NCBI GenBank assembly: GCA_002269645.1
Contig: NIVC01004857.1
Coordinates: 1-33,111, forward strand
DNA from: Macrostomum lignano
Lineage: Eukaryota
Length of the DNA stretch: 33,111 nucleotides
Direction: 5' to 3'
The notes beneath the pieces were generated by a model that saw only the letters and a list, made by a program, of their open reading frames with translations, was not told the DNA's origin and ran no database searches. This document shows positions 692-26,629 of this stretch, piece by piece. A program made the position numbers and the translations under genes. Numbering within the stretch: the first letter of the stretch is position 1; each line of letters opens with the position of its first letter.

Positions 692-3600
692 ATGCGAGCT
701 GTTTCCAAATTTCTATTGCTTCTGGCTGTTGCGCACACCGCTGCTATCCAAGACTGTGAGTTTGAGTTGAGTTCGGGGGTTTCAACCAAGGCAATAAATT
801 CTCAATCGACAGCTTCATCACTGTTACTCGCAGGCAAAATAGAAATCCGCCGCACGCGCGTTCTCAACTCGTGGCAGTCGTCCTTCGGCAACGGTCCAAC
901 TTGCTTCCACAACAGAACTGAATCGGAGGAAGCCGCTGTGCTCAGCAAGCCCAGCAGCAGCTACAGGTTTTTTCACAGCGGGGACGGCTCGGCAGCAGAC
1001 GGCGGGTTTCACTGGTTCGCAGTGCAGCTGAGTGAGCCACTGCTCATCAGCTCAGTGACCCTGAAGGGCAGAGAATGTGAGTGGCACTGTGATGCAGCTC
1101 ATGCACGCACAGAGCTCGTTCGACTTGATTTTCTCAACTCATTCTAGACGGGAAATCGTTCACTTACTCGAGAACCAGGGGGATCGAAGTCTGGACAGCA
1201 GGAAGCAGCAGAGTGATGCTCTCGGGAGATCACTGCAGCTCCAGGAGCATGAGCAGCCAGTTCAGAGAGTCGCGGTGGTACTGGAGGCTGTGCGGCGTCA
1301 CGGACGGCCAGCAAAGAAGCATCAGGGCTGGTGAGACACTGACGGTGAACTGCACACAGGATGTAAGTGTCTCAACCAGTGCATCAATAAACTGCAGTGT
1401 TCTAATGCTTCTTTTTTGAACAAGTTATTTTTCAAATCCAGGTCCGGTACTTACTGTTGAGGCGTGACGTCAGAACTGCTGATCCTTCCATGACCCACGA
1501 CTTCATGAGCTTCGCAGACCTCAGCCTGCAGACAATGGAGCTGAGTAAGTGCTGCGGATTGGACAGAACATGCTCACCTGGACACAGTTGATAGCAAATA
1601 GCAAAAATTCTGATCACGAAAATGTTCACGAAAATTGGCACGATTCACACCCATAAGGCGCAACCCCCAAGGCACAGAGAATGCCGTCAGCATTATATCA
1701 ATTACTAACTTTGCGAAGTGTCTTCCCCTCGTCTGCAGAAGTGTCTTCCCCTGAAGAGACGGTTAGAAACGACAATGTCTCAGTCAGCTGCTCACTGCAC
1801 TGCAAAGGTACGAAAGTCGACGCGCAGACAAAAAGATTAAAGCTCTGCTCTCCTCGTGGCAGCTGCACAGCTTCCAACGCGGTACACATCCCAGAATCCA
1901 GTCAGAGGACTCAGGAAGTTACACCTGCAAGATTGGTACGGTCAGGAAGACCACCAACCTCACCGTGTATTGTGAGGCGCTCTTCAATAATTTTTCTCGA
2001 AATTATTTTCTTTCGCTTTTCAAACAACGGAAAATCCGAATGAATCCGAATCCGCAGACCCACCAACGAGAGTGGCGGTCTCAGTGCTGAACTCTCAGAA
2101 CTGCCAGAGTTTGACCCATGTGACCGTGCAGTTCACGTCTTCCTCATCGCAGCCCGTGTCTGAGCACAGATGCGACGCCAGAGTTGGAGTCAACTTGTGG
2201 AATCTCACACTGCTACCAGTAGTGCGTGCTCAAAATTGATACAGTACTGACTGACTGACTGACTGACTGACTGACTGACTGACTGACTGACTGACTGACT
2301 GACTGACTGACTGACTGACTGACTGACTGACTGACTGACTGACTGACTGACTGACTGACTGACTGACTGACTGACTGACTGACTGACTGACTGACTGACT
2401 GACTGACTGACTGACTGACTGACTGACTGACTGACTGACTGACTGACTGACTGACTGACTGACTGACTGACTGACTGACTGACTGACTGACTGACTGACT
2501 GACTGACTGACTGACTGACTGACTGACTGACTGACTGACTGACTGACTGACTGACTGACTGACTGACTGACTGACTGACTGACTGACTGACTGACTGACT
2601 GACTGACTGACTGACTGACTGACTGACTGACTGACTGACTGACTGACTGACTGACTGACTGACTGACTGACTGACTGACTGACTGACTGACTGACTGACT
2701 GACTGACTGACTGACTGACTGACTGACTGACTGACTGACTGACTGACTGACTGACTGACTGACTGACTGACTGACTGACTGACTGACTGACTGACTGACT
2801 GACTGACTGACTGACTGACTCACTATTAACTGCAAATGTCGCTGCACTGCAGAGCAAGGACGGTTACGTCAGCAGATGGGTATTTCCTACTGATGACGTA
2901 AAGAGGCTGGATATCAGCAGCGCCATCATCACTTGCTCTGCCGTGCAGAGTTTTCCGAAGGGCATCCGTATTCAGGCTGTCCACACAGACTCAACATTCA
3001 CGAGCTGTTGCAGCGGAAGTCTGGTGTCTACAGTACTGGTGCTCCACATCGCTATGGGATTTTGTTTTGGCTTCATCGCGGCCGCAGCCTCCGCGGCAGC
3101 CATCAGACTCCGAATGCTCAACCGGGTAAGTACACACTCACAATGTGGCTGACATTGTGCACCAGAGGAGGTTGCAGGCAGTTGACGAAACTTCTCGAAG
3201 ATGCTGCGAGTTGTTAGAACCATCAATTTGGATTTCTGTTGCTCATCGATTTCATCAAGACGTCAATTATGAAGTTGCTCGTCCGATTTCATCAAGACGT
3301 CACTTGTGAAGTTGCTAGTCCGATTTCATCAAGATGTCACTTGTGAAGTCGCTCGTCCGATTTCATCAAGACGTCACTTGTAAAGTCGCTCGTCCGATTT
3401 CATCAAGACGACACTTGTGAAGTCGCTCGTCCGATTTCATCAAGACGTCACTTGTGAAGTCGCTCGTCCGATTTAATCAAGACGTCACTTGTAAAGTCGC
3501 TCGTCCGATTTCATCAAGACGACACTTTGAAGTCGCTCGTCCGATTTCATCAAGACGACACTTTGAAGTCGCTCGTCCGATTTCATCAAGACGACACTTT

Positions 3601-3814
3601 GAAGTCGCTCGTCCGATTTCATCAAGACGACACTTTGAAGTCGCTCGTCCAATTTCAGACAAGGCCGGACTCCTGCGGCTCTGCAGGCTGTGCCCGGCGG
3701 CGTCCAACGGCAGGGAGACCGGCCGCAGGGGGACCGGCGGCACCGCAGTCTGCATCTGAGTACGAGAACTCGGAGTACAAGCTGGAGAATGCGACTGGAA
3801 TCTATATTCTGTGA
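692..3814 (+). CDS. Gene A: F-type-lectin-like + Ig-like type I membrane receptor (multi-exon; one apparent 1-nt frameshift)
   Basis: Exons 692-755 (signal peptide MRAVSKFLLLLAVAHTAA), 834-1076, 1148-1362, 1442-1544 (lectin domain: WQSS...FFHS...HWFAVQL...SVTLKGR...IEVW...CG...C...VRYLLLR...MSFADL), 1739-1971 (Ig-like, frameshift at ~1907), 2058-2221, 2853-3125 (TM VLVLHIAMGFCFGFIAAAASAAAI followed by RLRMLNR) and 3659-3814 (tail ending EYENSEYKLENATGIYIL*). All junctions are GT-AG with compatible phases. A small extra cytoplasmic exon near 3166-3210 is possible but unresolved. About 483 aa if the frameshift is repaired. Confidence 0.8.
2246..2820. repeat. Perfect (ACTG)n microsatellite, ~143 units, intronic in gene A
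   Basis: An uninterrupted gact run lying between exons 2058-2221 and 2853-3125. Confidence 0.98.
3238..3658. repeat. 37/36-bp minisatellite, ~11.5 units, in the last intron of gene A
   Basis: Six 37-bp units gaagtcgctcgtccgatttcatcaagacgtcacttgt (3271-3492) are followed by four 36-bp units ending gacacttt (3493-3636). There is a degenerate 5' unit and a partial 3' unit ending at the splice acceptor. No spacers. Confidence 0.95.
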
Positions 3815-4924: not shown

Positions 4925-5686
<762 letters not shown>

Positions 5687-7056: not shown

Positions 7057-10000
7057 ATGAAGCTGACTCTGCTGCTACTGCTGCTGCTGGCATTGCTCTG
7101 CGCACGAGCGACTGACACGTGTGAGTTGAGTGCCGGCTTGTTGTAATCGCAGACAGAGAGCACTGCTCATCCCCATTGCTCCAACTTGCAGGCGAGTTCC
7201 CAATTCGTTGGAGCCGCGTGCTGAGCACCTGGCAGTCGTCCTTTGGAATCATCTTTGGAGAACCCACGTGTTTCTACCAACGAAGCAGGTCGCGTGAGGA
7301 TTCCTTACTAAACAATATAAGATACAAATTCTTCCACAGCAAAGGGCAGGGCGAGGCGGACGGCGGGTTTCACTGGTTCGCAGTGCAGCTGAATGAGCCA
7401 GTGCTCATCAGATCTGTGACTGTGAAGGGCAGAGGCGGTGAGTCACTCACTCAAATGCGGGCTCCAAGCCAGCTGTCTCTGCTCACGGTGCTCTCACATT
7501 CCAGATAAAGCATCGCATGTCTTTGAAAGAGCCAGAAGCATTGAGATCTGGACATCAGACAGCAGCAGTCAGCTGTTCTCAGGAGATCACTGCAGATCAA
7601 GGAACATGAGCAGCCAGTTCAGAGAGTCCCAGCAGCACTGGAGACTGTGTGGGGTCACGGAGAGCAACAATTCACAGATCGCGGCTGGGGAGATCTTCAC
7701 AGTGAACTGCGTTGCAGAGGTGAGTTTTGGAGCGAAATCTGGTAACCATCGCAACCGATTTCGCAACACCAACGCAACCACTTCAGGTGCGGCAGTTGCT
7801 TCTGCGAAGAAACGTTACAGCTGCTTCAACTGACCACGGCTTCATGAGCTTTGCGGACCTGCGGCTTCAAACGCTCCCGCTGAGTAAAAGCAGCTGTTCT
7901 CAAATGTTTGCTTCTTTGATTACGCGAAAAAAACAGTTATTGAGCCCTCTAATTTTGTCTGAGATGGGATACTCCCCTTTGCCTGAAGTACTCAAACAAG
8001 AAGATTCTAGCATGTTCCCTTTTACCATTTAGCCTGTACAGTTGTAAGTTTTTCAACCGAGACTGCTAGGGTAGATTTATCAGTGCTTGATTGATCCAAA
8101 CATCTCGCTTTCAGACATTTCAAGCCCTCAACTGGTGGCAGAGCAGTCCAGCTTTGAAGTTCGCTGCTCTCTGCAATGCGATGGAGCTGATCACCTGAGT
8201 ACACACTCAGCCAAGTTGCAGCTGTGCTCACCAAACGGCAGCTGCACCGTCAGGAACCAGCTGAAGGTCGACAGAGCTCAGCCATCGCACTCTGGAGTTT
8301 ACACCTGCAGAATTGGCTCGATAAATCAATCGTCTTCAATCACAATCCTATGTGAGAGCCTGATGTAGTTTGAGTTTGCTCTTATTAGTTCCTTAAATAT
8401 TAACCTGCCTGTCACAGTTAAAATGTTCCTGTAAATTAAATATAGACAGCTTTTAATACGGAGACCTTGATCATGCCATTTCGTATCGCATTCCAGCGTC
8501 ATCACCAAACCAAGTGGTTGCTGAGAACTCCAGCCTCACGCTGAACTGCACTCTGCACTGCGGAGGCGGCGATGCAGCTCAGTGCGCAGACTCCGCTGCT
8601 GTCGGACAGCTGCTGCTGTGTCGCCCCAACAAGACCTGCACAGCACAGACGAGTCTGCAGATCCCAGCGGCAACTGCAGCACAATCGGGAGACTACAACT
8701 GCAGCATTGGACAGGTGGTTGCTGTCACAAGTGTGGCTGTTCTCTGTGAGTAGCAGCTTTGCACCTGAGTGGTCAGTCACTGTCTGCATGTACATCGCTG
8801 ACAAATGAAGTCATTCCTGTTTGTTATTTTACAGCTGCAACGCCGCATCAAGTGGTCCCTGAGGGCTCCAGTCTCAGCCTGGGCTGCGTACTGCATCATG
8901 CGGGCTCAGCTGATTTCCGCCAGCCTCAGCTGTGCTACCCGAACGGCAGCTGCTCAGCTGAGAGCTCGATAAGCGTTGCCAGTGCCAGGCCATCGAACTC
9001 CGGTCTCTACAGGTGTCGGCTCGGCTCACTGGAAATACCGTCACTTGTTGCTGTGCTGTGTAAGTTGCTCAGATCATCTTACACTTTCTTGCACTCTCAG
9101 TTTCTGAACAAGAACTGATCAGTTTCTCTGTGGATCAGTAAGTGATCAGTCTCCAGATTCATTCTTGTACAAAAGTAAGAGTTTCTCTACTGACAAGTGT
9201 AGCATGCTTAAGCAGGCAGTTCGGGCACCTATAGTTTGCACTCCGTGACCCCCACCCAGCCTATCCACTTCCCTCTGCTCGAGCACATCCCAACGCGCAC
9301 TCAATGAACTGGTAATCTGTGTTCTACCAGACAACACTCGTTAATATACAGACACAGCCACATTCTATTTCTCCACCGTTTTGAGTGGCTAACTATGCAC
9401 TCGCAACAACCAGCTAGAGTTGCTCGCTACAACAAGTAGAAAGCAATGAGTGTGGCGATTTATTCCTGCATGCAAGGCAAAAAATGTGACCAAGTAAGAG
9501 AGCAGAGTTCTGGTAGGAGTTCCGACTTGAGCTTGGATGAAGACGTATGAGTATGAACATGATCAGAAAAATCCATCTCAGGGTCGATATTCTACTCGTA
9601 CTTTTAAGCAGCTGTGCACTCCAAGTGGGGACTGCCGACACAATCAGCAGATCCACATTGCTCATGTGAAACATCTGTCAAAATTACTTCAAGTCGCTGT
9701 TCTGAGTGAGTCATTGATTAGCTTAAAATGCTTTCACTAAAGATGGCAAGGATGCATTCGATAGGACACGGAGATTTTTTCCACCAAGAACTTCCATTTC
9801 AATAGAATAGAAATAGGCTCAGTTTGAATAAATTTATGTATCTGAAATTTATTAAATTCCCAGCTTCATCTCCGAGCCAGAAAGTTTCCGAAAACGCAAG
9901 CTTCACCGTGAGCTGCTCTCTGCACTGCGGAAATGCATCGCAATGCTCAGACCGTCCACTGGGTGGCGACCTCCGGCTGTGCCCTCCGAATGGGAGCTGC

Positions 10001-13000
10001 CTGACAAATTCAAGTGGACAGAGCTCAGGCAATGCACTCCGGAGTTTATACTTGCAGATATGACGTCATTGAGATTGAGACAGAAGTCTTTGTTCTTTGT
10101 GAGTAGAAAGTAGGCTGCCTTCAGAATCTTGTTGCTCAGTGTTGCTCAATGTTGCTCAGTGTTGCTCAGTGTTGCTCAATGTTGCTCAGTGTTGCTCAAT
10201 GTTGCTCAATGTTGCTCAGTGTTGCTCAGTGTTGCTCAATGTTGCTCAATGTTGCTCAATGTTGCTCAGTGTTGCTCAGTGTTGCTCAATGTTGCTCAGT
10301 GTTGCTCAGTGTTGCTCAGTGTTGCTCAATGTTGCTCAGTGTTGCTCAATGTTGCTCAGTGTTGCTCAGTGTTGCTCAGTGTTGCTCAATGTTGCTCAGT
10401 GTTGCTCAATGTTGCTCAGTGTTGCTCAGTGTTGCTCAGTGTTGCTCAATGTTGCTCAATGTTGCTCAGTGTTGCTCAGTGTTGCTCAGTGTTGCTCAAT
10501 GTTGCTCAGTGTTGCTCAGTGTTGCTCAGTGTTGCTCAATGTTGCTCAATGTTGCTCAAGTGTTGCTCAGTGTTGCTCAATGTTGCTCAATGTTGCTCAA
10601 TGTTGCTCAGTGTTGCTCAATGTTGCTCTGTTTGCTCAGTGTTGCTCAGTGTTGCTCAGTTTTGCTCAGTGTTGCTCAGTGTTGCTCAGTGTTGCTCAGT
10701 TGCTCAGTGTTGCTCAGTGTTGCTCAGTGTTGCTCAATGTTGCTCAGTGTTGCTCAGTGTTGCTCAGTGTTGCTCAGTGTTGCTCAATGTTGCTTAATGT
10801 TGCTCAGTGCTCAGTGTTGCTCAGTGTTGCTCAGTGTTGCTCAGTGTTGCTCAATGTTGCTCAGTTGCTTGCTCAGTGTTGCTCAATGTTGCTCAATGTT
10901 GCTCAATTGCACAATCGATTAACTCACCTTCATCAGGTGAGTTCCCAGTTCGGCGAAGTCGCATTCTGAGTTCGTGGCAGTCATCATTCGACGATGGTCC
11001 GACGTGTTTCCACAGCAGGAATCAGGCAGACGAAGCCTCCATCATCAGCAACAGGCAAACCAGCTACAAGTTCTTCCACAGCGCCAACAGAAGCCAAGCA
11101 GACGGCGGGTTTCACTGGTTCGCCGTGCAGCTGAATGAGCCAGTGATCATCAGATCTGTGACTTTGAAGGGCAGAGAGGGTGAGTGAAAGACAACTTACT
11201 TCTTCTTTCTGCCTTAGGCTTCTGTAAAGACTGAGTCTCCTGCTCTGAAGATTCCACCGTACAGTAATATGTTTCAGTAAGATCAAAAGTAACTCCTCAT
11301 CTTATTTTCAGACGGTGTGATATATAATTATAATCGAGCAAAGGACATTGAAATATTTACCTCCAACTCTAGCAGCTCCCTGATCCATGGGGATAACTGC
11401 AACATCAGGAATATGGGCCTTCAGTTTAAAAATTCGATGCACCTTTGGAGGCCATGCGGCGTAACTAAAAAGCAGGGAGACGTCGCAGATGGAGAAATGT
11501 TTCACGTGAAATGCGTTGCTGAGGTAAAAATATTTCAAATATCTGCAGTGATTTGAGTCTTATGGTCTCTTAAAGCAACCTGAAATGATGAGCATTTAAA
11601 CTGCAGGTCCGAAGTCTACTCCTGCGAAGAAACGTGTCTAAAGACACGGACGGGCACATGAGCTTTGCTGACCTGAGGCTTCAGACTGGGAAAATCAGTA
11701 AGATTTTTGAGCTGTCATGAGTTGTGTCCAAGTCCTGGTGTGTGTGCTAAGTTGAAGCGCTAGCAGTACATGCAAAATGACTGAAGTTCGTCTCAAAAGT
11801 GTCTCAAATCATTGCATTTCAGAAGTCGAGAGCCCCAAGGCGGTGCTGCAGCACTCAGCATTCTCAGTGCGCTGCCTTTTGGACTGCAACGGTCGAACCG
11901 AATTCTCACCGAAGTTGGAGCTCTGCCTTCCAAACGGAAGCTGCGTTGGACAAGCTGAAGCCGTCATTCACAGGGCGCAGCTGTGGCACCATGGAAACTA
12001 CACGTGCAAGCTGGGCAGCTCGCGGAGCTCAAAGTTCTTAACGGTGTTTTGTAAGTTGATTCCGGCCTCTGGATGACAGTCGATTGATTAGCATTTGGTT
12101 ACAGCAGCGTTGCACTGGGACTCCTCTCGTACACAGATTGGGACAAAATTCTCAGTGTATGCTCACAAGGAGTGCAAGCTTAAGGCTGACTGGTGGCAGT
12201 AGGAGCAGCCTTCAACGGCAGCAGATCAGACTGCATTTCAGGTCACCTTTCTATTAGCCTTTTATCCTTACAGGGTATGTCAACTAAGTCCGGAAAGGGA
12301 AACGGATTGTCAAAGGGGTGGTTTCTCTCTCGGACGCCATTATTGGATCCACCAACCAGTGTAGAACGATCGATGGAGATGTGTACATATTCAAAATATT
12401 CACATAGACTTTTGCACTCAAATGATGTGGAGTAACTTCTATTCATCTTCGGTACGGTATTCAATACGTATCGATCCACGGCCTAAATAGGTTTGAAAAA
12501 ATCATGAAAACCATCAGATAACTGAAAAGCTTATTGATCGAACTTGATGAACTCCATTCCCCTTTTTAATATGCTCACAGACCCGCCATCAAGCGCATCA
12601 ATTTCTGTACTCAATCTGCCAACCTGCGAGAACTCATCCGACGTATTGGTACAGTTCGCATCGTCTGCATCTCTACCAGTGCCCGAGCACAGATGCAGCG
12701 CTGTTGGTGGCGGATTGGAAGTGCGAAACCTCACGCAGCTGTCATTTGTGAGTCGCTTGCATTTTGCACTTTCACACTATGAGTGACTACGCGCTGACAT
12801 GCTGACCAGCGAGCTTCATCAATTCCAGAGCTCGTGCGGAGACGGTTGGGTCAGCACGTGGGCACTGGCGATCGGGGGGAAGCTGAGCTCAGAGTGGCTT
12901 GTGGGCCTCGTCGAGTGCAGCGCAGTGCAGAATCTGCCGCCGGAGATCCGGTTCAAGGCCGAGCACAGGGCCTCAGCTTGCTACAGCTGCGGCAGTCACA

Positions 13001-13438
13001 ATGGTCTCATCAAACCTGATGTGCAGTCCTTACACATGTACATTTCACAGTTCTTGTACGGATTTCTAACAGCAACTGCTCTGCTAAGTGTGCTCTTGCT
13101 TGTCTTGGGCTCGGTGAGTAACCCCTCTCTCTAAATTATATTTTCCGTCTCTGTGCTCTAAGCTGCCGTGTTGCATCTGCTAACTTCAGTTTTCAGTCAT
13201 CAAATTCAGAGTAACAAAGTCGTGGACAAAACAAACTATTCCAATGGTAAGCTTTGATTTTCTCAATCTGTACAGTCGACTCAAACTGTGACAGCTAAAG
13301 TTCGAACTCTTTGCGCTTTAGTCTGATCGATCCACGACGCCTGGATCTGGAGCACCGGTTGCTGCCGCTTCTGCTTCCATGGAGTATGAGAACTCTGGTT
13401 ACAACCTGGAGGATGCTACTGGTGTCTACGTGACCTGA
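7057..13438 (+). CDS. Gene B: double-lectin receptor, SP-FTP-Ig-Ig-Ig-(two decayed Ig)-FTP-Ig-proximal module-TM-Tyr tail
   Basis: Exons 7057-7120 (MKLTLLLLLLLALLCARATDT), 7192-7437, 7505-7719, 7787-7883 (lectin 1), 8115-8351, 8497-8745, 8835-9059 (Ig-like), 10937-11179, 11312-11523, 11607-11697 (lectin 2), 11823-12050 (Ig-like), 12581-12747, 12829-13113 (TM), 13190-13246 and 13322-13438 (tail [19 protein letters not shown]). The exon sum is 2733 nt = 910 aa + stop, open throughout when the two defective Ig exons are skipped. It could instead be two partial genes (7057-10098 and 10937-13438). Confidence 0.72.
9582..9705 (+). pseudogene. Decayed Ig-like pseudo-exon in gene B
   Basis: It keeps the family motif QLCTPSGDC and the terminal VAVL plus a phase-1 GTGAGT donor at 9706. 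It lacks the B-strand Cys region and the SGxYxC strand, and I found no phase-compatible acceptor. The start coordinate is approximate. Confidence 0.55.
9864..10098 (+). pseudogene. Frameshifted Ig-like exon in gene B
   Basis: Good acceptor (ttcccag) and donor (gtgagt). The first frame gives VSCSLHC...LRLCPPNGSC and a second frame continues VDRAQAMHSGVYTCRYD...VFVL. The exon is 235 nt (not 3n). Only 13 nt lie between the Cys codon and VDRAQ (10001-10013), versus 21 nt in the paralogous exon at 8115-8351. Confidence 0.75.
10130..10907. repeat. 10-bp minisatellite (TGTTGCTCAG/TGTTGCTCAA)n, ~77 units
   Basis: Two unit variants (G or A) are interspersed. The array fills the intron between the last Ig exon and lectin 2 of gene B. 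Confidence 0.97.
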
Positions 13439-13459
13439 GGGTTTTCAAGCTGGCAAAGT
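12517..13459 (+). repeat. Near-identical segmental duplicate of 25687-26629
   Basis: Constant offset of 13170 with no indels, and 29 substitutions in 943 bp by manual count (~97% identity). Confidence 0.95.
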
Positions 13460-14865
13460 GATCCTGATCCTGATCCTGATCCTGATCCTGATCCTTATCC
13501 TGTCCTGATCCTGATCCTGTTCCTGATCCTGATTCTGATCCCGATCCTGATCATGATCCTGATCCCGATCCTGATCCTGATCCCGATCCTGTCCTGATCC
13601 TGGATCCTGATTCTGATCCTGATCCTGATCCTGATCCTGATCCCGATCCTGTCCTGATCTTGATCCTGATCCAGATCCTGATCCTGATCCAGATCCTGAT
13701 CCTGATCCTGATCCTGATCCTGATGCTTATCCTTATCCCGATCCTGATCCCGATCCCGATCCTGATCCTGTCCCGATTCTGATCCTGATCCTGATCCTGA
13801 TCCTGATTCTGATCCTGATCCTGATCCTGATCCTGATCCTGATTCTGATCCCGATCCTGATCCTGATCCTGATCCTGATCCTGATCCTGATCCTGATTCT
13901 GATCCTGATTCTGATCCTGATCCTGATCCTGATCCCGATCCTGATCCTGATCCTGATCCTGATCCTGATCCCGATCCTGTCCTGATCTTGATCCTGATCC
14001 AGATCCTGATCCTGATCCAGATCCTGATCCTGATCCTGATCCTGATCCTGATCCTGATGCTTATCCTTATCTCGATCCTGATCCCGATCCCGATCCTGAT
14101 CCTGATCCTAATCCTGATGCTTATCCTGATCCTAAACCTGATCCTTATCCTGATCCCGATCCTGATCCTGATCCTGATCCTGATCCCGATCCTGATCCCG
14201 ATCCTGTCCTGATCCTGATCCTGATCCCGATCCCGATCCTGATCCTGATCCTGATCCTGATCCTGATGCTTATCCTGATCCCGTCCTGATCCTGATCCTG
14301 ATCCTGATCCTGATCCTGATCCTGATCCTCCTGATCCTGATCCTGATCCTGATCCTGATCCTCCTTATCCTGTCCTGATCCCGATCCTGATCTGATCCTG
14401 ATCCTGATCCTCCTGATCCTGATCCTGATCCTGATCCTGATCCTTATCCTGTCCTGATCCCGATCCTGATCCTGATCCTGATCCCGATCCTGATCCTGAT
14501 CCTGATCCTGATCCTGATCCTGATCCTGATCCTGATCCTGATCCTGTCCTGATCCTGTCCTGATCCCGATCCTGATCGATCCTGATCCTGATCCTGATCC
14601 TGATCCTGATCCTGATCCTGATCCCGATCCTGATCCTGATCCTGATCCTGATCCTGATCCTGATCCTGATCCTGATCCTGATCCTGATCCCGATCCTGTC
14701 CTGATCCTGATCCTGTCCTGATCCTGATCCTGATCCTGATCCTGATCCTGATCCTGATCCTGATCCTGATCCTCCTGATCCTGATCCTGATCCCGATCCT
14801 GATCCTGATCCTGATCCTGATCCTGATCCTGATCCTTCCTGATCCTGATCCTTATCCTTTCCTGA
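13460..14865. repeat. (GATCCT)n hexamer satellite, ~1.4 kb, starting 22 nt after the gene B stop
   Basis: gatcct units with gatccc/gattct/gatgct/tatcct/gtcct variants. Confidence 0.98.
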
Positions 14866-15329
14866 GCCTAATTCGATTTATTGTTCTCAGTTCATGAGGA
14901 TGTGTTTATCCCAGAGCTAGATTTACCGTACACATAGGCCAATATATTTTATTTTACTGCGCTTGATACACATTAGAAATAATGACGCAACACTCCCGAA
15001 TACTGTAAAACAGTTTTGAAGCCGACAGTTCAATTACCAATATCACCTGATCTGTTTGATGCAGAAGCAAAATTCTTTTGATAGTTTTTTCAGAATTTAT
15101 TCACAATTCACTTTTTTTCCAATAAACCATATGATATATAGTATTAGCCAATGCTAAACATAGCTGTGCCTTAAGCTACATCATATCTAGCCTAAAGTCT
15201 AAAAGCTAAGCACTGCAGGTCATTTGATGTTTTCAACAGTTTAATATTGGTCCAAGACTTTTTAAAACAAATTTATATTACCATACCTAATTTCATACTA
15301 AATTATATTAAAAAACAACAATATACACC

Positions 15330-16110
15330 TCTTGCCGGCCACAAGTGGTCACAGAGGGGGAGGTGTCAGAACACACGTCATTGGGCCGCACTTCTCAAAA
15401 ATTCATCTCCTCCAGTCAGAGTCGGAACGGGGGTTCTCGCATCCTTCAGAAGCAGCTCGGGGTAGCGCGTCGTTTGCCATTGGCTTCGTCTCCGCGGACC
15501 CTACGCCGTTGACGTAGCGTTGACGTTGACCTAGCAGGTCGTGTAACGGCTCACGGCAGCGACTCTTCGACCGGATGACGTGGCCAGCCAGCTTGAGCCA
15601 GCTTGAGAGCGCAGCATCACAGAGTGCTCGGCGTAGAGCAGAGAACAGTCTCGACGACTGCCCGAAACAGCTGAGCCCTGGTCGCGTCATCCAGAGCCTC
15701 AGATCGCAGCACTGCGAGTGCACCGAGCGTAAGGCGTCTCCTCAAGTCACGGCGATATCAGGCACGAGTTCGCCGAGGTATACAAAATGTGTGGAAGCGG
15801 GGTCTCATTCCTGACAGCATCTCGGCAGGTCCAGCGGCATAGTGAAGACTTCTGCGCGTGCAGCGTGAGAGGCCGACCATCGCTGCCGCTTTCGTCAAGC
15901 CATCCAGCAGCCGTTGGGCGCCTTCGACTGTTGAAGACACTGCAACGCTAGGTCATCCACGTAGCCGAGCACACAAAGACGCTTCTCCGGATGCCTCCGA
16001 CTCATGCGACGTCTAAGCATGAAGCCATTGCCATCGTCCGACTCAGGCAGTCTGGTTCTCAGCACCCAGTACTCGTACGGTACCAGCACAAATAGAAAAA
16101 GCGCCAGCGT
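15330..16110 (-). mobile_element. Degenerate RTE-like non-LTR retrotransposon fragment (C-terminal part of RT)
   Basis: Minus-strand frames give FLFVLV...WVLRT, RLCVLGYVDDLAL (YxDD motif), STVEGAQRLLDGLTKAAAMVGL, FVYLG and KLAGHVIRS, with many frameshifts. Boundaries are approximate. Confidence 0.8.
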
Positions 16111-16457
16111 GTCAACCTAAAGTAGTAATAATCTGCAGTACATGTACAAAGACAAGTAAACTGAGACAGTGTACCATTAAATTCGCATCTGGATTTTTGC
16201 ACTTCCGAATTCCAAATAGAGCTCTGTCAGGCGAAATTTCAGCTGTTCCTGTCTGTTTGAAATTATTGAGTTATAGTTTAATAAAAGTTTCATCATTAAG
16301 CAACGATGCATTGCATAAATGCAAAAGAAAACTCTATTTCAGCAATTCCTATACTGGAGTTAAATTGGAGGAGTAAGTGGGCGCAGGGCCCAAACCGATA
16401 TTTAATGGTATTTATACCAGACATTAACTTTGGGGGTTGAGCCCAGAATAATAAGGA

Positions 16458-16492
16458 GAGGGGGGCGGAGGGAGACTGGAGAGCCAATCAGA
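16458..16492 (+). promoter_or_regulatory. Possible GC box + CCAAT box upstream of gene C
   Basis: gggggcggag followed by agccaatcag about 720 bp upstream of the gene C ATG. Motif match only. Confidence 0.3.
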
Positions 16493-17210
16493 AGGCGGCG
16501 AGGGAGACAGAGATAAGAATAACAAGATTGAGCTAGACAGAGGGCCTTTTCATATTGCTTGTTCTGGTTCCAGAACCAGAACCAATTTGTGAAGTATAAC
16601 TTTTTGTCTCCATAACTAGAGGGAGATACGTGCTATAAAGTTTTTATTATTGAATGACAATCGCCAAGAAGAAAGTGAAAAATTGTGCTAAGTGAGGTTG
16701 TTAAGGCAGTCAAACATTCAACAGAGTTAAATAGTTATACTGCTGTTTTTCTTGGAAGATCCGAACCGATTCTGATTCTGGAATTGGTAATATGAAAAGC
16801 CTCAGAGAGAGAGGTGAACTAAGAAATGACTAGGAAAGTCGCGACACCTGCAGAGTCAGAGACGGCCAAGCAAACTCAGTCCCCATCGGAGCCAAGAAAC
16901 CCAAATATGATTTTCGTCGCTTATTCAAACCAAGTTCAGTTTGGCCAAGGACTTCTATTATCTAGAAGTCCTTGGTTTGGCTAAGCTGCAGCCAGAGAGT
17001 TTGTAAACATTTTATTTCAACTTGCAGTCTTATACACAGATGGAACTTGTAGTCACCACCTGCCGGAACAGAACTTGCGACTGCAGCCCTGCATCAATGG
17101 TTTCTGCAGCCAAATACAAAAGCCATGACACAAGATCAAAATGGATTCTTTTTTGCTGCGCTTGTTGTACTAACGACAGAATTGCTTTGAAGTGATCAGC
17201 AAGTGTCTGC

Positions 17211-20200
17211 ATGATGGAAGCTGCAGCGCTGATATCCCTGTTAGGGGCTCTGCTCTGCATCGCTACCTGTCTCTGCGACTGTGAGTGAAAGCTTTTTAAA
17301 CCCTCCAGGGTGTTTTTTCAAGCGAAATGGATTTCTAACTTCTCAAGTTCCTATGTTGCAGGTGGGGTGCCGATTCGCAACAAGACTGTACTCAACGCCT
17401 GGCAGTCCTCTTATTTCTATTCTTGCTTTCACGAGAGAGACCAGCTGAATGAGAGCAATGTTCTGAACACAAGCCAAAGTTTTCAGTTCATTCACAGCAA
17501 TGACAAAAAGCATTTTAACGATAGCGGATTTCACTGGTTCGCTGTGCAGCTGAGTGAGTCAGTGCTCATCGGTTCTGTGACAGTGAAGGGCAGCGAGGGT
17601 GAGTTACACCACAGACCAGTTTTATGAAGCACTGATTGACTAGTTGGTTAACTTACTTGACATAGCTTCAGGGAGTCCGGGCATCCGGATGCAGCGAGGC
17701 GTCGCCGCCCATTTTGCGAACCCCTGGCGACCAGGGAAGCTGGTGCTGCGGTGTTCTGCAGGGAGATCCGGTGGTGCCAGTGTCCGCAGCGCGGTAGCCC
17801 TTAGGTAGCGGACGAGCTGGCAGAGATTCTCGGGCCTGAAAACGTCGGAGAGGTCCGAGTTTGGGCTGAGGTAGGTGAAGCCTGTCCTGAGTAAAGGCGG
17901 AGCATTCACAGATGAAGTGCTCCGCATTCTCGACACCGGAGAGGCAGAAAGGGCATCATTCCTCGCTACGGATTTTTCCTGAAGGTAACGATGCCTGGCA
18001 AAACAGCCATGACCCGAGAGGTCCATGGTCACGGCCCTGATGTCCCTGCGGTTGAGTCCAAGCAGGACTCTTGGCTAGTTGGTTGATTTCATAAAAAACA
18101 GCAGCTGCTTTTTATTGACTGTCTAAGCTGGATGCTGTAATTTAACCCTAAAGTCATCGGTTCGCTTATGAAACTAAATCACTGCAGCATTCCTGAAACC
18201 CTCTTTCTTCCGGTATTTTTACAATCTCGTTGATCTGGCAATAATTTCAGTCTTCTCGGATGCTGAAATGTTCCGCAGCTCAGCTGGCATCGAGATCTGG
18301 ACTTCGAACTCAGAGGAGCAACTGTTTTCTGGCAATCACTGCAACTCAAAAAATATGAGCAAACAGTTTAATAAGTACCTGAGCAGTTGGAAGCGTTGCG
18401 GTGTCACTACAAATAGGTCGATGAGTAGCACACGTAATGGGCTCTACATGGTGGACTGTCTTGCAGAGGTGAGCATTGATGCTACAGAGATTATGTGCTT
18501 AATTAGTTCATCTCACCCGGATCTCAAAATGTTGAGTGCAACATCCCAGGTCCGGTATCTGCTCCTCAGGAGAAACGTGAGCCTGAGCTTCTCAGCCAGA
18601 GACTACGGCTATCTGAGCGTCTCAGATCTGACGCTGCAGACAGTGCGCCTGGGTGAGGCTGTGGACTTTCCCAAAGCACTTGAAGACCAGAGAAGCCTCA
18701 AAAGTGGCATGAAAATATCTGATAATATTGTGGGCTTTGGCCTGACTTTCTAGTCATCAGGCTTGTGCACTCTCTGTGCATTGGGGGCTGGCCTTCATGG
18801 GTCATGAATGACACGAGAACTGCCACGGTAAATAGCATTATAGCATTAAAGTATAAATTTATATGACTTGATTTGCAGTACCATCGACAGACCAACTTGT
18901 TGCTGCAAACGAAAGCTTTAACGTGAGCTGCTCGTGCATTCTATGCAACGGCACGGAGTTGAGCACGAACTCAAGGCAGCTGCAGCTGTGCCAACCAGAC
19001 GGAAACTGCACGAAAACCTGGAAGCTGTCGGTTGTGAAGGCACAGTCGCAGCACTCTGGCCTCTACACCTGCCAGCTTGGCTCTGCCGCAGAGTCAACTT
19101 CCGTCACAGTGCTGTGTGAGCTGAGTGTCATTGCTTGTCTCCATATTTAAATACAATTAATAGACAAAAAGCAACCATAACGTGTTGATTTTCAGCATCC
19201 TCGCATGCGCAAACAGCAGCCGAGAACGACAGTTTTGCAGTGAGCTGCACGCTGTACTTCAATGGTTCGGAGATCATTGGTAACAACACAAGCGGCATGC
19301 AGCTGTGCCAACCAGATGGGAACTGCAGTGCGGGCCCGGAGCTGCGGATCAACAGGGCGCTGCGGCAGCACTCCGGCAGCTACACCTGCCAGGTGAACTC
19401 CACTCGAGTTTCAACCTTCGTTACCGTGCTGTGTGAGTTTCATTTCAATTTGAAATTGAATGGATAAAGAAAGGCCCTTTAACTCATCTGAAATGTTTGT
19501 TATAGCCCAACAGAAACTTAGAAAATAAGTTTCCACTTGACTAAATAGCTTGTGATACAGATGATGATGTCGTTGTGTTGTTGTTGCTGCTGCTGTTGTT
19601 GTTGTTGTTGTTTTTTTTTTGTTGTGCTTTTAAACCTGATGTAACCGCCCTTGTCGCCTGTCCGCTCCGTAGAGAGACGAACGAGGGGGGGGGGAGACGA
19701 GAGAGGGGGCAATGACCGTAGGCTGCCTATGACCGGGCAATGACCTGACGGACCTCCAGCACCAGACTGTCCCGTCCACATGATTGATAGCTTTGGTAGT
19801 GCTTCGTGACCAGAGGGCCAAGGACCCACATGGACCCCACCTGCAGCCAAGGTGCAAAACCTGCAGCAAAGGCTGCCACCACTCTATGTGACCTGGCGCA
19901 CCTGGATCTTTCTACCAGACCTCTCGAGGCTAGAGCCCCGCCTGGGGTGGTTACCAGGAGATTTAGGCTAACAGGGGAGACACATGCAGCCGAGTACAGG
20001 GACTCTGCTTGGGGCATGATCGGGAACTCTGGGCTCAATCTGGAGGATTTCTCAGCAGGGGATCCTTTGTGGCTGTGAGCGAGGCTGACTTGCGACTTTG
20101 ATTACTAAGAGTAGTATGAGGCGAACATCTACTGTCTCTAGTTTAGATTGCTCAGGGCGAAGGGACGCGTCAGCATGGGGGTTGCAACCTTCCTACTGCC

Positions 20201-23200
20201 ATTCTGTGCCAAGACTCGCTAATCCCTCTACTGCACGCACACACGGCCCCGCAGCACGCACTCACAGACGAGCTTTGCACGGGGAGAGGCCATTAACTTA
20301 CCCAAACTTCCCTATGCTTTGCCACCCCGGGAGAAAGGCTTAGCAAGCCATGAGTGAAATGATGGTGAAAGAGTGAATAATGATGAGGTTAGTTAATAGT
20401 TAATAATTAGGCCCTTAGGCAAATAACCAGGCAATTAGGCGGCTTCACTATTGAGTAAAAATACAGCAAAAGGTACGGTATCACAACTGGCTCAGCCCTC
20501 TAATCAGACAATGGAAAATAGGCAAACCCCGGATAAGCAAAGGCAATTAGAGCACAAATCAGTAACAGGAACTTACCGGCAGCTGCACAGAGAGAGAGAG
20601 AGAGAGAGAGACGGAGTGACCGAGGGTGGCTGTAGGCTGCAGTCAGGCGGACAGTGAAGCGGCGATGCGCTGAAGCGACGAGGCGCTGGTGTAGATCAGG
20701 CGAAGCTGATGATGCTGGGCGGTGTCAGACCGCTGGCCAATAGGCGAGCTCACTTGGGGAGCTGAAGATAACTTGGCGGTATCAGACCGCAGACCGGCAG
20801 GGATTCGTCTTATAGACGAATGGGTCAGAACTCAGTCTGACGGCAAGTCTAAAGAAAGACTAGGAGCCCGAAGGTGGGCAAAAGTTGAGTCTTCTCATGC
20901 CGAAAACCGCCTCCTTTTATAGCCTTCCCAGCCGCCGCTCCAAGGTCGTTTCCATGGCTCCCTCTCTCTGATTGGCTGCCGGCCGAATGACGTCAGAATG
21001 AGTCATGATGAGAAACATGAGACCGGCATAGCAACATGAGAAATAGGGAAATTGCGCAATCCGGAGGTGGGGTGGGGGGATAATTGGCGCAGCGGGTGGT
21101 CGCGAAAGTGTTGCGCAAGCAAACATTGAGAACAATAGGGCTGGGGTCGAGAACAAAGGAATTGGAAATCGGGGATAATTGGGGAGAATCGAGAACAATA
21201 GAAAAGCAAACATTGGAGAAAAGGTGATAATTAGGTGCGAAAACGAGAACAAAAGAAAGAGAAAATCGGAGAAAATGTGATGATTGGTGGGGGTAAAGAG
21301 AACAAAAGAATCAAAAACGAGAACAATAGAAGCGGAGGTGGGGTGGGTGTCGCATGAGAAATTTGGGGAGGAAAACAATAGCATGAGAAAAGGTTGCGCA
21401 AGAGAGGGGATGAGTCATCGATGAGTCATCGAGGGGAAGAAGGGGTCACACGACTTGCGTCACCGTTTGGGAGTTTGGGAAGGGATGGGAGGTCGATGAG
21501 CACACAAAATACTGTAAGTAGACGCAGAGAAAGAGGGGACAGAGCAGGAAAATAGTGCAGAGAGAGACAAAGAGAGGGGGGATGGGGAAAGTACAAGAAG
21601 ACTAGGGTGGAGCGCAGGGGAGATAAGGTAGAGGGGGGAGGTACAGAGAGGGATAGGGAGCTCCGGAAAGGCAGGTGTGGCGGCAGGGGAGACGGAGTCA
21701 AGGCAGCAGGAGGGTGCAGCAGAGCGGGAGTCTCCAGGCCTGGCCGGAGACCTAACCGAGTCTCGACAGCTCTGCGCAGGGGAGGTGCACGGGATAGGAG
21801 GCACCTTCGAAAAAGTTCCCATGCCCTATCCCGCGACCAGAGCGTGGTTACATCAAACCAATGAGATATAGTCAAGTCAGTTGGCACGAGACGGGCAGGT
21901 TCGAGCCTGGCCAATCCAAACCAAGAAAGTTCGACAGAGAGAGAGTTGGAGCGCGCTAACCCGGCGAGACAAGCCATGCACAGCCGCCCTTGTATCCGAA
22001 TCCCGAACAGATAGGTAGCGAAACACCGAGTTGTCCTTCCAGTCACCCAGCTTCTTGATGATCATCAGCAGTGGAACACCGAGCTGCATGGCTGCTGTAG
22101 CGCCGCGCCGCCGCAGCCTGTGGCTAGTGAACTCACGTGGTGACAAACCCGCCGATGTGTACAGAGTGCGAAGCCGGCCATCAAACCTGCTAGCCGTCAG
22201 AGGCAAACATCCCGTTGCCGACCACGTGGAGAACAGGTGAACCGGACGCGGCGCCTGGCCGATTCGGTTTGTCCGTAGCTGCCGCTCGAGCGCACGGAAC
22301 GGGCACAGGACACCCAAGCTCCCATCAGGCAGTTTCGGAAGAAACACTCGCTGAACTCGGTCGCCAAACTGGTTGGTCTTTGAATGCCGTACGGTGAGCT
22401 CACAGTCGCACTTTGAAAAGACGATGTTTGATGCCGCCAGGTTGCACCACAGATCTAGCCGCTCCGATTGCATCCGATCACATTCGCTTTCCGCAGCATA
22501 CCCCACCAGGCTGCCAGAACAGCTGCCCAGAACGCGATGTCACTCTTCTTTCGTTGGTCCAGGTGGGCGTTCAGCTTGAGGAGATCTGCGATTCTGAGGG
22601 GCTCCCTTGAGCACTGCTACCGACTGAGACATCAGCGAAGACCACAGACCACAACGCACCAGCTTAACCATCGGCGACTCACACGGGTCCGGCCGACCGA
22701 GGGCTCTGAAGTACAGCGAGACCGCGTTAGCGTACGCCTGGCAACTCCGAAAGACTGACAGCCGGGTGACAACTCGGCCACTTACACGGCCACGTGCACC
22801 GGCTGCGCGCGCACCGGTGTCAAGTGCTAGGAGTTGCAAAAACACAGCCAGGACGCGAGCTGCGACCGGTAACTCCGCTTTGTGTGGGGCCAGCAGGGCC
22901 GAACGGAGACAGCAGGGCAGAAAGCATGGCTGGCGATTTCATTAAAACAGCAGTTTACAGTGCCATACACTCAAAATAAAAATCGCGCATCTTGCCTACC
23001 GCGTGCAGCCGAGAGCACGGGTCCGCAAAAACGAGGCACCAGCCAGGCATATGAAAAGTGCGCACCTCAACCCCACGCCTAACAGCAATGAGCATGGCAG
23101 TCTGGAACAGCGGCTGCAACTCAGGCTGCCGGCAGCAACCTCTGTTATCATACCAACAGCCGCGACTACGACCGTAGTAGACCACGACCGAACCGTCATT

Positions 23201-26200
23201 TAAAAAGACACTCCAGCGAACCATAGCCAATAGCGGAACAATAGCGTCTTTGTACGTGATATGCTTGTCTTTAAACTTTCCTCCAGCATCCAGATCCCAA
23301 TTGACATACAGCCAATCCATCATTCCGCTACCATTGCGCAAAATGGCACCACCACCAGCACTGCTGGCATCGGTTTCGATGATCCAGCCGTTTGTGCGAC
23401 TTCTCCAAAGCTGAAAATCAGGCAGCTTCAGAAGGGCACCGCGCCACCAGAGTAAAATACGCACAGTGTCAGCGGACACTCGTACTTTGTGATGTGGCTT
23501 TTCCAGGGCATTAGGCAAGTCGAACAGGGGCCTGAGGAAGCAACTCCCAGCGTGCACCACTTGGACGACCCAGCTGAGCTTGCCACAAAGCGACGAAAGC
23601 TGGCGTTTCGAGAGACGCCTGCTCTGCGAGAAATTAAGCAGTGTGGTGCGCATTTCCTCACACTTTCCCGCCGGCACACTAAGAACTCCACGGACAGTAT
23701 CAATCTTCACACCGAGATACACCAAGCATTGCGTAGGTTCAACCACTTTGTTCCAATTGACACCAAAACCCAACTGGCGAACCAACTTCATCAGTTCTTT
23801 CAGGGCATCCATACACTCCTCCTCGCTCTCGGCCGCAACCAGAAAATCATCCAGGTAGACCGAACTATTGGCCACACCGGTCGCACCATCATCCTCTTGA
23901 CCGCTTGAGTAAGCCGGTAGAAAATCTCGACCGAGGCGCAGCTACCAAAGGGTAGCCGGGTGTCGATTAGCCATGTCAGATCACGGTTGCCTTTAAAGCG
24001 CTAACCAATGCCAGTCGCCTGGTAATCATCCGGATGAATCGCCACACTTCTGTAAGCTTGCGACAAATCAAGCTTTGCCATGAACCAGCCCTTGCCGATA
24101 GAGGCTGCAGCCTTCTTGACGGACTCAAACTTAGGGCTCAGCTTCCTCGTATAAGTGTCTTTTACCGAGTAGCCCGGAGGCGTGCTGCAGTCATGAATAA
24201 GTCGAACCTTCCTGTTATCCTTGGGAATAGCTCCCAGAGGGCTGACCATCGTCGGCTTCTCAGGCACCACCACGTATCTGCCATTCTCAGTCTCTTCCTT
24301 AATTTGCAGCTTCGCAGAGTTCAGTTCTTGTCGAATGGTTCGCCTCATGGTGGGCCTCAAAACAGATACGGCAAACATGTCGGAATTTGCAGCTTGAAGT
24401 GCAAGTAGATCTCTAGCCCGTCTGCCGTTCTGAGGCTCTTGGGGTCTATTGGTTTTGAAAACGCTGCTGCCATGGCTGGGGCAATGACTTGCTGACTCCA
24501 TGGTTTGCTCGAGTTTCAGTTCTGATTAAGTGCTTAGCAACGAGTTGGAAAGACTCCTTGCCCCAGCACATACCAGTTTCAGCTTGCCTAGTGCGTTAGT
24601 CCTCTTCAAAACGGTTCACCTGAGCAAGGCCGAAGCCCGCGTCAAACAGCTCGCCTATCTGTATTGAGTAGCGTAGGTGATTCATCAAATCAGTCGTGTC
24701 GGCAATTCCATTCCTATTAGTCACCAGGGCACCATCCTTGATCATTTGCATCATCAGCCTGCCATTGCCTACCAAATACTGCGCTGCTGTGATGCTATTA
24801 TGTTTTCTGCTCTTGTAAGTGATTCGGCCACCAAAATCATTAGCCAGCACCTCTTTCTGCTCAAAGCCGTCAAGGAAATCACGAATCAGGAGAGCCTTAC
24901 GCCTGCCCGAACACTCCATCCGTTCATTAGCCCTGTTCCGTGACAACAATCTACCAAGCAGCTCATTGCCATTATCTTCCTGGTCTAATCCAGCATCATC
25001 CCACACTTCAGGAAAGCAACTGGGGGCAGCAGGCTTGGCACACTCACCGCGATTCATAGGATGGACACTCGCGTTGCAGATCTCCGATCTCCCTCTTGAG
25101 TTTAGCGGCTTCCTTGTGTAGCTGCAACAGTCTGATCTCCTCTTCCACCTTCGCGATGTCCTCGTCCAGGCCCGCCGCCGACTCCCGAGCCGCCTCCGTA
25201 CTGATGTTGTCGTCTGCATCGGCTTCTTGCTCATATTGCTCCATGTTCTGCAATAGCGAGTCTGTTCACGACTGGTCTGGGGCCGCGAGCAAGGCGCTGA
25301 CAAGGTCGGCCTTATTGCCCCGACTGCTTACATTAGCGTGGGCACACAAGGCTTGCAGAGCCACCTTGCTCAGGTGCATGAGTTTCACGCGGTCCGCCAT
25401 TGCAAAAAGAATCGATACGCACTTGGCAGGCCATAGGCAGCCCGCCCCACATTAAATAAAGGCACATAAACCGGGGGCACGGGACCAAAGGCCCGGCCCA
25501 CCACCCCCCTGCACCAACGCACAAGAGCCACCCCCACTGGTTTAACACCCAACCAAGCTACGCCCGGCCGGACCAGTTATTATTTAAGCTCAATCATCCC
25601 TCTTATTTGCAAAAAAGTTGCTGTGCAAACATCTGCTGTGCAGAAGTCTGGCCCAGCCAAATTAACCAATAAATCCGCCTTAATTCGATAACTGAAAAGC
25701 TTATTGATCGAACTTGATGAACTCCATTCCCCTTTTTAATACGCTCACAGACCCGCCATCAAGCGCATCAATTTCTGTACTCAATCTGCCAACCTGCGAG
25801 AGCTCATCCGACGTATTGGTACAGTTCGCATCGTCTGCATCTCTACCAGTGCCCGAGCACAGATGCGGCGCTGTTGGTGGCGGATTGGAAGTGCGAAACC
25901 TCACGCAGCTGTCATTTGTAAATTGCTTGCATTTTGCACTTTCACACTATGAGTGACTATGCGCTGACATGCTGACCAGCGAGCTTCATCAATTCCAGAG
26001 CTCGAGTGGAGACGGTTGGGTCAGCACGTGGGCACTGGCGATCGGGGGGAAGCTGAGCTCAGAGTGGCTTGTGGGCCTCGTCGAGTGCAGCGCAGTGCAG
26101 AATCTGCCGCCGGAGATCCGGTTCAAGGCCGAGCACAGGGCCTCAGCTTGCTACAGCTGCGGCAATCACAAAGGTCTCATCAAACGTGATGTGAAGTCCT

Positions 26201-26608: not shown

Positions 26609-26629
26609 GGGTTTTCAGGCTGTCAAAGT

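Follow-up and report, generated by a model that had tools for sequence, protein, structure and literature searches.

Gene B consists of two incomplete receptor units

Have two tandem genes of a receptor family become one, and if so, by what kind of event? This question is raised by a locus, gene B, in a 33,111-nt stretch of genomic DNA of the flatworm Macrostomum lignano (hereafter the window, meaning the whole stretch that was analyzed). By six-frame translation and splice-site inspection, the window holds four tandem units of one receptor family, all on the same strand. A canonical unit, as found in genes A and C, comprises a short signal-peptide exon with a phase-1 end, a discoidin-like domain of ~185 amino acids (aa) spread over three exons, one to several immunoglobulin (Ig) exons with phase 1 at both ends (phase 1-1), a proximal exon, a transmembrane (TM) exon, and two tail exons with a conserved C-terminal ...EYENSxYxLExAxGxYxx motif. 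The other two units, B1 and B2, constitute gene B. A preliminary description, made from the sequence alone, had called the discoidin-like domain a lectin and had proposed that gene B is a fusion encoding a receptor with two different lectin heads. The layout behind this proposal is real in the assembled sequence, and a fusion is the simplest reading of the sequence as assembled. Gene B is quite possibly a deletion-type chimeric locus within a tandem, Macrostomum-specific receptor cluster.

Unit B1 (7057-10098, + strand) opens with a signal-peptide exon (7057-7120; MKLTLLLLLLLALLCARATDT, ending in a phase-1 T followed by gtgagt) and continues with the three "lectin" exons (7192-7437, 7505-7719, and 7787-7883), three phase 1-1 exons encoding Ig1 (8115-8351), Ig2 (8497-8745), and Ig3 (8835-9059), and a fourth Ig exon (Ig4, 9864-10098), all bounded by canonical ag acceptors and gtRag donors. 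Unit B2 runs on the same strand from 10937 to a stop codon at 13438, without a signal exon upstream: it contains its own "lectin" exons (10937-11179, 11312-11523, and 11607-11697), a sole Ig exon (11823-12050), and the proximal (12581-12747), TM (12829-13114), and tail exons (13197-13246 and 13322-13438, stop included). Given an upstream phase-1 T, the eight B2 exons read through 464 uninterrupted codons to the stop, and B1 minus Ig4 contributes 444 uninterrupted codons plus the split junction codon. A splice from 9059 to 10937 therefore yields an uninterrupted open reading frame (ORF) of 908 codons, in which each of the 15 exons has canonical splice sites. The alternative splice, from 10098 to 10937, is blocked as assembled by a frameshift in Ig4. 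Parts of paralogues in the same orientation, loss of the intervening exons, and an open frame across the 9059/10937 junction are features of a chimeric gene that are present here.

The exons that had been described as missing are indeed missing. Used as tblastn queries, the proximal, TM, and tail exons of genes A and B2 and of a related UniProt model (P0002) gave no match in 9060-10936, the best hit being on the wrong strand (E 0.2), while the same procedure detects these exons between paralogues at E 1e-8 to 1e-12. Signal exons were sought with a strict rule (an ATG, a hydrophobic core, a phase-1 end, and a GTRAG donor), which found none in 9060-10936. Applied to 47 kb of non-array window sequence (both strands), the rule gave four matches, three of which fall on the signal exons of A, B1, and C. 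In a second cluster of the family (L001; NCBI contig NIVC01002544.1, 89160-111382), where the + strand was scanned, it returned exactly the three signal exons of three tandem family genes and no extras. The additional match in the window lies upstream of gene A (271-364, + strand; MWLKYSKIFIFDVVAATLRLHAVPDIHTVGL, then C followed by gtaagc) and is probably due to chance. In all six other units (A, B1, C, and the three L001 genes), the signal exon stands 71-130 nt upstream of lectin exon 1. The corresponding position in B2 is taken up by a minisatellite array.

Other ways of starting B2 were also considered. A start encoded by the array was discarded, as there is no ATG in the lectin frame after a TAA at 10795, and the first in-frame Met of B2 lies deep inside the lectin domain. 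In M. lignano a 35-nt spliced leader (SL) that ends in ATG is added by trans-splicing to the transcripts of about 30% of the genes, and the reported trans-splice acceptor motif is YTNCAG (PMC8629364). Trans-splicing at 10937 was rejected as well: the ATG of the SL would be out of frame, giving the 11-codon peptide MVSSQFGEVAF*, and the acceptor CATCAG does not fit the motif. Since the SL provides no in-frame start, the array provides none, and no earlier Met is in frame, a B2 protein entering the secretory pathway could, on this sequence, be obtained only through the B1 exons.

The two heads and the phase of the junction

The two heads of gene B differ. They share 65% aa identity in exon 1 and 57% in exons 2-3, and their nearest relatives are different: the B1 head is closest to P0010, encoded outside the window (83%), and B2 exon 1 is closest to P0002 (75%). 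They are thus old paralogues, which argues for the join of two genes and not for a recent internal duplication.

The preliminary description had also pointed out that the phase-1 T of an Ig donor plus the GT of the lectin exon restores the Cys codon supplied elsewhere by the signal exon. The codon is correct, but it carries little meaning. The ectodomain exons of the family are phase 1-1 throughout, its Ig donors all end in T, and the lectin exon starts with GT, so that a Cys at the junction is automatic; moreover, one relative (P0004) has Ser at the equivalent position, and the second L001 gene has Tyr. This uniform phase implies that any intron-to-intron rearrangement within the family would keep the frame. 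Both phase-1 exons and intronic minisatellites are routine in this family, and neither is special evidence for a fusion.

The minisatellite between the units

The gap between Ig4 and the B2 lectin (10099-10936, 838 nt) had been described as almost entirely a 10-mer array, which agrees with our measurement. Tandem Repeats Finder reports a single array on the + strand (10130-10905; consensus TGTTGCTCAG, with an A variant; period 10, 77.9 copies, score 1273, 92% matches), whose 776 nt make up 92.6% of the gap. Only 31 nt of unique sequence remain on either side: a 5' flank (10099-10129), which is the start of the intron after Ig4, and a 3' flank (10906-10936), which ends in the acceptor cttcatcag. 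The array has the properties of a minisatellite, that is, a 10-nt unit repeated head to tail with variant units interspersed; among its 75 TTGCTCA cores, 47 belong to the G variant and 28 to the A variant. Its heterogeneity is polar, the first ~42 units being perfectly spaced and the last ~33 containing six indel events.

The suggestion that each G-variant unit is a potential cryptic acceptor is literally true of 47 sites, of which just four keep the frame open. No forward frame of the array contains a stop except for the TAA at 10795-10797, which lies in a variant unit and is the only stop in the lectin frame. Read as protein, 10103-10966 would encode (CCSVLLSVAQ)n, and use of the in-frame CAG acceptors at 10808, 10835, 10865, and 10877 would add Cys-rich insertions.

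A single copy of the array motif, GTTGCTCAG, is found 5 nt past the Ig3 donor of B1, where the sequence reads gtaagTTGCTCAG. This hints that the array may have grown from a motif native to post-Ig introns, although the observation was made post hoc. The 3' flank may be what is left of B2 intron 1; its similarity to intron 1 of gene A reaches only p~0.03, among 10 tests.

The frameshift in Ig4

Ig4 measures 235 nt, one base too many, and in the resulting +1 frame it ends in the stop LYLQI*. The lesion maps near caaattcaag (about 10005-10015), in an A/T run (ctgacaaattcaagtg). Apart from this lesion, Ig4 is a perfect Ig exon of the family, with its splice sites and its conserved Cys and YTC residues intact. 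A similar discrepancy exists in gene A, whose Ig exon 1739-1971 has 233 nt and lacks one base of a CCC run (about 1886-1888); the UniProt entry A0A1I8H7P4 (P0001), otherwise 100% identical to gene A, reads AVHIPRIQSEDSG in frame. The deficit in gene A is either a homopolymer error of the assembly or an allelic frameshift. Because gene A shows a 1-nt difference from an independent record, the frameshift of Ig4 should not be taken at face value either and may be an assembly indel.

This bears on the alternative that the first unit makes a secreted lectin-Ig3 decoy by means of the Ig4 stop, a proposal that becomes fragile. In an mRNA that includes Ig4, the premature stop lies upstream of eight exon junctions. 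Premature stops placed upstream of exon junctions destabilize the mRNA under the general rules of nonsense-mediated decay, and such a transcript would be expected to follow them; the frameshift itself is, in addition, possibly an assembly indel.

A model for the origin of gene B

The layout can be explained by one event, since a deletion or unequal crossover between the post-Ig intron of B1 and intron 1 of B2 would suffice. We infer one breakpoint in the intron that follows the last Ig exon of B1 and the other in B2 intron 1. Such an event would have removed the proximal, TM, and tail exons of B1, the intergenic spacer, and the promoter and signal exon of B2. The hybrid intron would be the one that the 10-mer minisatellite now occupies, probably after growth from the native post-Ig motif, and the array may have supplied or attracted a breakpoint. 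Transcribed from the B1 promoter and spliced from 9059 to 10937, gene B would give a type-I membrane protein of 908 aa that carries two different lectin heads, in the order signal, lectin1, three Ig domains, lectin2, one Ig domain, stalk, TM segment, and Tyr-motif tail. If the Ig4 frameshift were an assembly error, the 10098 to 10937 junction would give a product of about 986 aa.

Unequal exchange has left another trace in this cluster. The region 12517-16312, which contains the proximal, TM, and tail exons of B2, a TGATCC array, and downstream sequence, is found again at 25687-33077 with about 92% identity, where it forms the 3' half of gene C. The 3' exons of B2 and C are 97% identical, while their lectin heads share just 42-48%. 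The repeated region is a recent segmental duplication or gene conversion, and it is evidence, independent of gene B, that the cluster has recently undergone unequal exchange.

Evidence against a working receptor and alternative explanations

Several observations weigh against the view that gene B is a deletion-born fusion whose product is made and used. Neither B1 nor B2 lectin exon 1 nor the junction is present in any of 5.8 billion proteins or of 1.84 billion cluster representatives. A0A1I8H768, the only protein model at the locus, spans B2 exons 2-4 and is identical to B2 lectin exons 2-3. Genes A, B, and C all lack an NCBI transcript-based model, so that the whole cluster may be weakly expressed. 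With Ig4 included, which is the default splice path as assembled, translation ends at LYLQI* after 510 residues. In the 3' part shared by B2 and C, exons have diverged as much as introns (3.1%, 19/620, and 3.0%, 10/324, respectively), and the exon changes are 17 nonsynonymous to 2 synonymous (pN/pS 2.8), a ratio drawn from 19 changes only and with lineage unpolarized. There is thus no sign of purifying selection in the 3' exons of B2 compared with C, and the pattern appears compatible with neutrality or with diversifying selection. At conserved lectin positions B2 carries atypical residues (SGDHC replaced by HGDNC, and IEIW by IEIF), which a second copy, A0A1I8HGC7, shows as well. As for the mechanism, comparison of the 31-nt array flanks with other introns gave a best p of about 0.015-0.03 in 20 comparisons, which is not significant and leaves the breakpoints unplaced; the array may lie at the junction by coincidence, because minisatellites occupy many introns of the family. 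Finally, the unfused parental arrangement was not retrieved in contig look-ups for the UniProt models P0001, P0002, P0003, P0010, and P0011.

What stands of the proposed two-headed receptor is that an upstream ectodomain runs into a unit without a signal exon, that the heads differ, and that the 9059/10937 junction is in frame; that the receptor is made finds no counterpart in any public protein model. A function of the fusion is unsupported, and it is doubtful whether the worm really makes and uses the fusion protein. The complete proposal, i.e., a working hetero-bivalent receptor born recently by intron-to-intron deletion at the minisatellite, with the B1 promoter, two divergent heads, three to four Ig domains, and one TM/Tyr-motif stalk, is unlikely as a whole. 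A two-lectin relative, A0A1I8J207 (2 matched stretches), is unusable as a precedent, since the annotation set to which it belongs contains a demonstrably wrong fusion: in A0A1I8JLC6 the tail of the first L001 gene is joined to the second gene at lectin exon 1, and a good signal exon (13876-13939 of L001) is passed over.

The same structure could instead be dead, a 3'-truncated B1 followed by a 5'-truncated B2 forming a chimeric pseudogene too young to have acquired stops. The frameshift in Ig4, the want of a signal exon or start in B2, the equal divergence of exons and introns with its excess of nonsynonymous changes, the unusual lectin residues, and the lack of a protein model for B1 and the junction would all be expected of such a relic. 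Against decay, about 910 codons in 15 exons are intact, with no stop or broken splice site outside Ig4, and the lesion of Ig4 amounts to one base within an A/T run, comparable to the 1-nt discrepancy of gene A. The second copy of B2 exons 2-4 (A0A1I8HGC7, 94% aa identity) is open too. Faster evolution of B2 than of its neighbors between database copies was considered and discarded, its divergence of 6.2% falling within the family range of 2-7%, and the high pN/pS is equally explicable by diversifying selection or by decay of gene C. On balance, a dead relic is possible but on the unlikely side. An error of assembly would produce the same picture if two 10-mer arrays, one in the post-Ig intron of B1 and one in B2 intron 1, had been collapsed or misjoined, hiding the B1 3' exons, the spacer, and the B2 signal exon. 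M. lignano is a free-living flatworm with a repeat-rich genome and a recent, hidden polyploidy, and its assembly is acknowledged to be difficult and ambiguous (PMC10468722). The halves of the array differ, its 5' part being regular and its 3' part indel-bearing, merely 31 nt of unique sequence flank it on each side, and the homopolymer discrepancy of gene A indicates that the sequence is not error-free. Yet, with 776 nt and no Ns, the array is far below the length of long reads, and polar heterogeneity is normal in minisatellites; the independent UniProt models of B2, in two copies, start at exon 2 with no upstream signal exon, although this is weak evidence. Such a collapse seems to us quite unlikely.

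It has also to be asked whether B2 is an independent gene with an unrecognized 5' end, provided by a cryptic first exon within the Ig3-Ig4 intron or by an SL at 10937, B1 then ending upstream as a secreted lectin-Ig3 protein. The Ig3-Ig4 intron does contain a phase-1, weakly signal-like ORF (9547-9613; MSMNMIRKIHLRVDILLVLLSS, then T followed by GTGCAC). However, ORFs of this kind occur by chance at 0.36 per kb, so that about 0.4 are expected in the stretch; the donor GTGCAC lacks the GTRAG of every family donor, D and R break up a hydrophobic core of only six residues, and the candidate lies upstream of Ig4 and not 71-130 nt from the lectin exon. The SL fares no better, for the frame and acceptor reasons given above. 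As to an upstream end of B1, read-through of the Ig3 donor meets a stop at 9116 after 18 codons, and AATAAA (9827) and ATTAAA (9851) are found in the Ig3-Ig4 intron just upstream of Ig4, within chance expectation; a short secreted isoform of B1 is conceivable from these signals. An independent B2 is nevertheless very unlikely.

Comparison with known hybrid genes and receptors

As a deletion-type chimera, gene B would add one more case to a well-known and ordinary class of genome rearrangements. Tandem paralogues fused by deletion include the Lepore-type delta-beta globins, the red/green opsins, and the KIR/LILR hybrids. As in Lepore-type hybrids, the upstream paralogue of gene B would give the promoter and the 5' exons and the downstream one the 3' exons, with the intervening sequence lost, and the cluster bears other signs of unequal exchange. 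In contrast to them, the breakpoints of gene B would lie in non-equivalent introns (a post-Ig intron and intron 1), its product would concatenate two ectodomains and not preserve the parental length, and it is known from sequence alone. Exon shuffling by means of symmetric phase 1-1 exons is well known in animal extracellular proteins, and the lectin and Ig modules of gene B likewise start and end in phase 1, so that joins keep the frame. Unlike the ancient accretion of domains, gene B would be a case inside one young, lineage-restricted family. Intronic minisatellites of the human genome are sites of recombination and instability. The array of gene B resembles human minisatellites in its 10-nt unit, its about 78 copies, its interspersed variants, and its polar heterogeneity, but differs from the unstable ones in showing no sign of having caused a rearrangement, similar arrays being present in many introns of the family.

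The family also invites comparison with lectin-plus-Ig receptors of immune type, such as Siglecs, snail FREPs, and amphioxus VCBPs. It shares with them an N-terminal, putative carbohydrate-binding head combined with Ig domains and multicopy, clustered, fast-evolving genes, and with Siglecs in particular a TM segment with a Tyr-motif tail. The head, however, is predicted to be discoidin/galactose-binding-like and not V-set, fibrinogen, or chitin-binding, and there is no sequence relationship. For its weak F5_F8_type_C match and its discoidin-type model matches the head can also be compared with that of DDR1/2, neuropilins, and Caspr, from which the family differs in pairing it with Ig domains and a novel stalk, in having no kinase, and in a Pfam score below the cut-off.

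Should gene B prove real and expressed, it would offer a clean case, and one that can be dated, of how a tandem receptor cluster gains a new multi-head architecture, for which one deletion would suffice because all family exons share phase 1. As a working receptor, it would show phase-1 exon shuffling caught in the act of creating a new recognition specificity, in a flatworm-specific family that is possibly of immune type or involved in gamete recognition. As a relic or a collapse of the assembly, it would mainly illustrate the annotation hazards of the repeat-rich, polyploid genome of M. lignano, where automated models both fragment family genes (A0A1I8H768) and falsely fuse them (A0A1I8JLC6). 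The main wider value of the locus is as a pointer to an uncharacterized Macrostomum-specific receptor family, together with this caution on annotation.

Domain assignments and the receptor family

The Ig assignment is solid at the level of sequence profiles: Pfam Ig_2 matches B1 Ig1-3 in three stretches with 48.5 bits (cut-off 27), and Ig1-2 of gene C score 28.8 bits with Pfam Ig, over the gathering threshold. The head gives weaker matches. F5_F8_type_C (PF00754) scores 20.3 bits in B2 and 18.2 bits in B1, both under the gathering cut-off of 28.2, with E values of 6e-4 at best and 0.003 for B1. The AlphaFold model of the gene A domain, of modest confidence (predicted local distance difference test score 69.6, predicted template modelling score 0.74), gave 67 Foldseek matches in the PDB at E<=1e-3, with template modelling scores of about 0.4-0.5; the top 50 listed include CBM32, galactose oxidase N-domain, muskelin discoidin, SUN, and F-lectin chains. 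The predicted fold is a galactose-binding-like beta-sandwich. The name lectin is only the label of the preliminary description and is less secure than the Ig assignment, sugar binding being putative.

The first protein search returned matches that were all from M. lignano, and the identity of the spliced gene A product to A0A1I8H7P4, bar one site, identifies the window as genomic DNA of this species. A profile search with the lectin domain found 20 proteins among 1.84 billion cluster representatives, and each protein of this set that was looked up is from M. lignano. On these searches the family, with its discoidin-like head, Ig domains, and TM segment, appears to be lineage-restricted and found in M. 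lignano alone. A literature search found no paper on this M. lignano receptor family.

The tails of A, B2, C, and P0002 share the C-terminal sequence (E/D)YENS(E/G)Y(K/N)LE(N/D)A(T/A)G(I/V)Y(I/V)x (3656-3811, 13322-13438, and 26492-26608 in the three genes), which has three tyrosines including a YxN and is a possible signaling motif, of unassigned type.

Other features of the cluster

Gene A (692-3811, + strand) is the complete single-headed reference member and matches A0A1I8H7P4 except for the 1-nt deficit in its Ig exon. Gene C (17211-26608, + strand) is a complete single-headed member as well, with a signal exon (17211-17280), a lectin region (17362-18652), two Ig exons (18879-19115 and 19196-19432), and the 3' exons (25751-26608) that are 97% identical to those of B2. 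Its intron between the end of Ig2 (19432) and the proximal exon (25751) harbors a DIRS-like tyrosine-recombinase retroelement on the minus strand (~19500-25500), in which Pfam Phage_integrase (21880-22539, 23.4 bits, gathering cut-off 27.1) and RVT_1 (22958-23941, 28.9 bits, gathering cut-off 29.6) both score just under threshold. The spacer between A and B1 contains a degraded fragment of a non-LTR (non-long terminal repeat) retrotransposon (4945-5671, + strand), with weak RNase_H and zf-RVT matches below the Pfam cut-off.

Micro- and minisatellites are common in the introns of the family. Gene A has 145 copies of ACTG between its proximal and TM exons (2246-2824) and an array of 11 copies of a 37-mer before its last exon (3247-3657). 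The second cluster has at least three tandem family genes (L001 10001-21026), each with its own signal exon, whose introns contain 30-mer, GATA, and 46-mer arrays (10937-11458, 15966-16587, and 19815-20334 of L001); a relic of a lectin exon lies on its minus strand (2083-2261). Downstream of B2 and C, arrays of the hexamer TGATCC (13459-14869, 240 copies, and 26629-32208, 937 copies) begin 21 nt past the respective stop codons, inside the presumed 3' untranslated regions, and the nearest AATAAA signals beyond them are found at 15121 for B2 and at 32459 for C.

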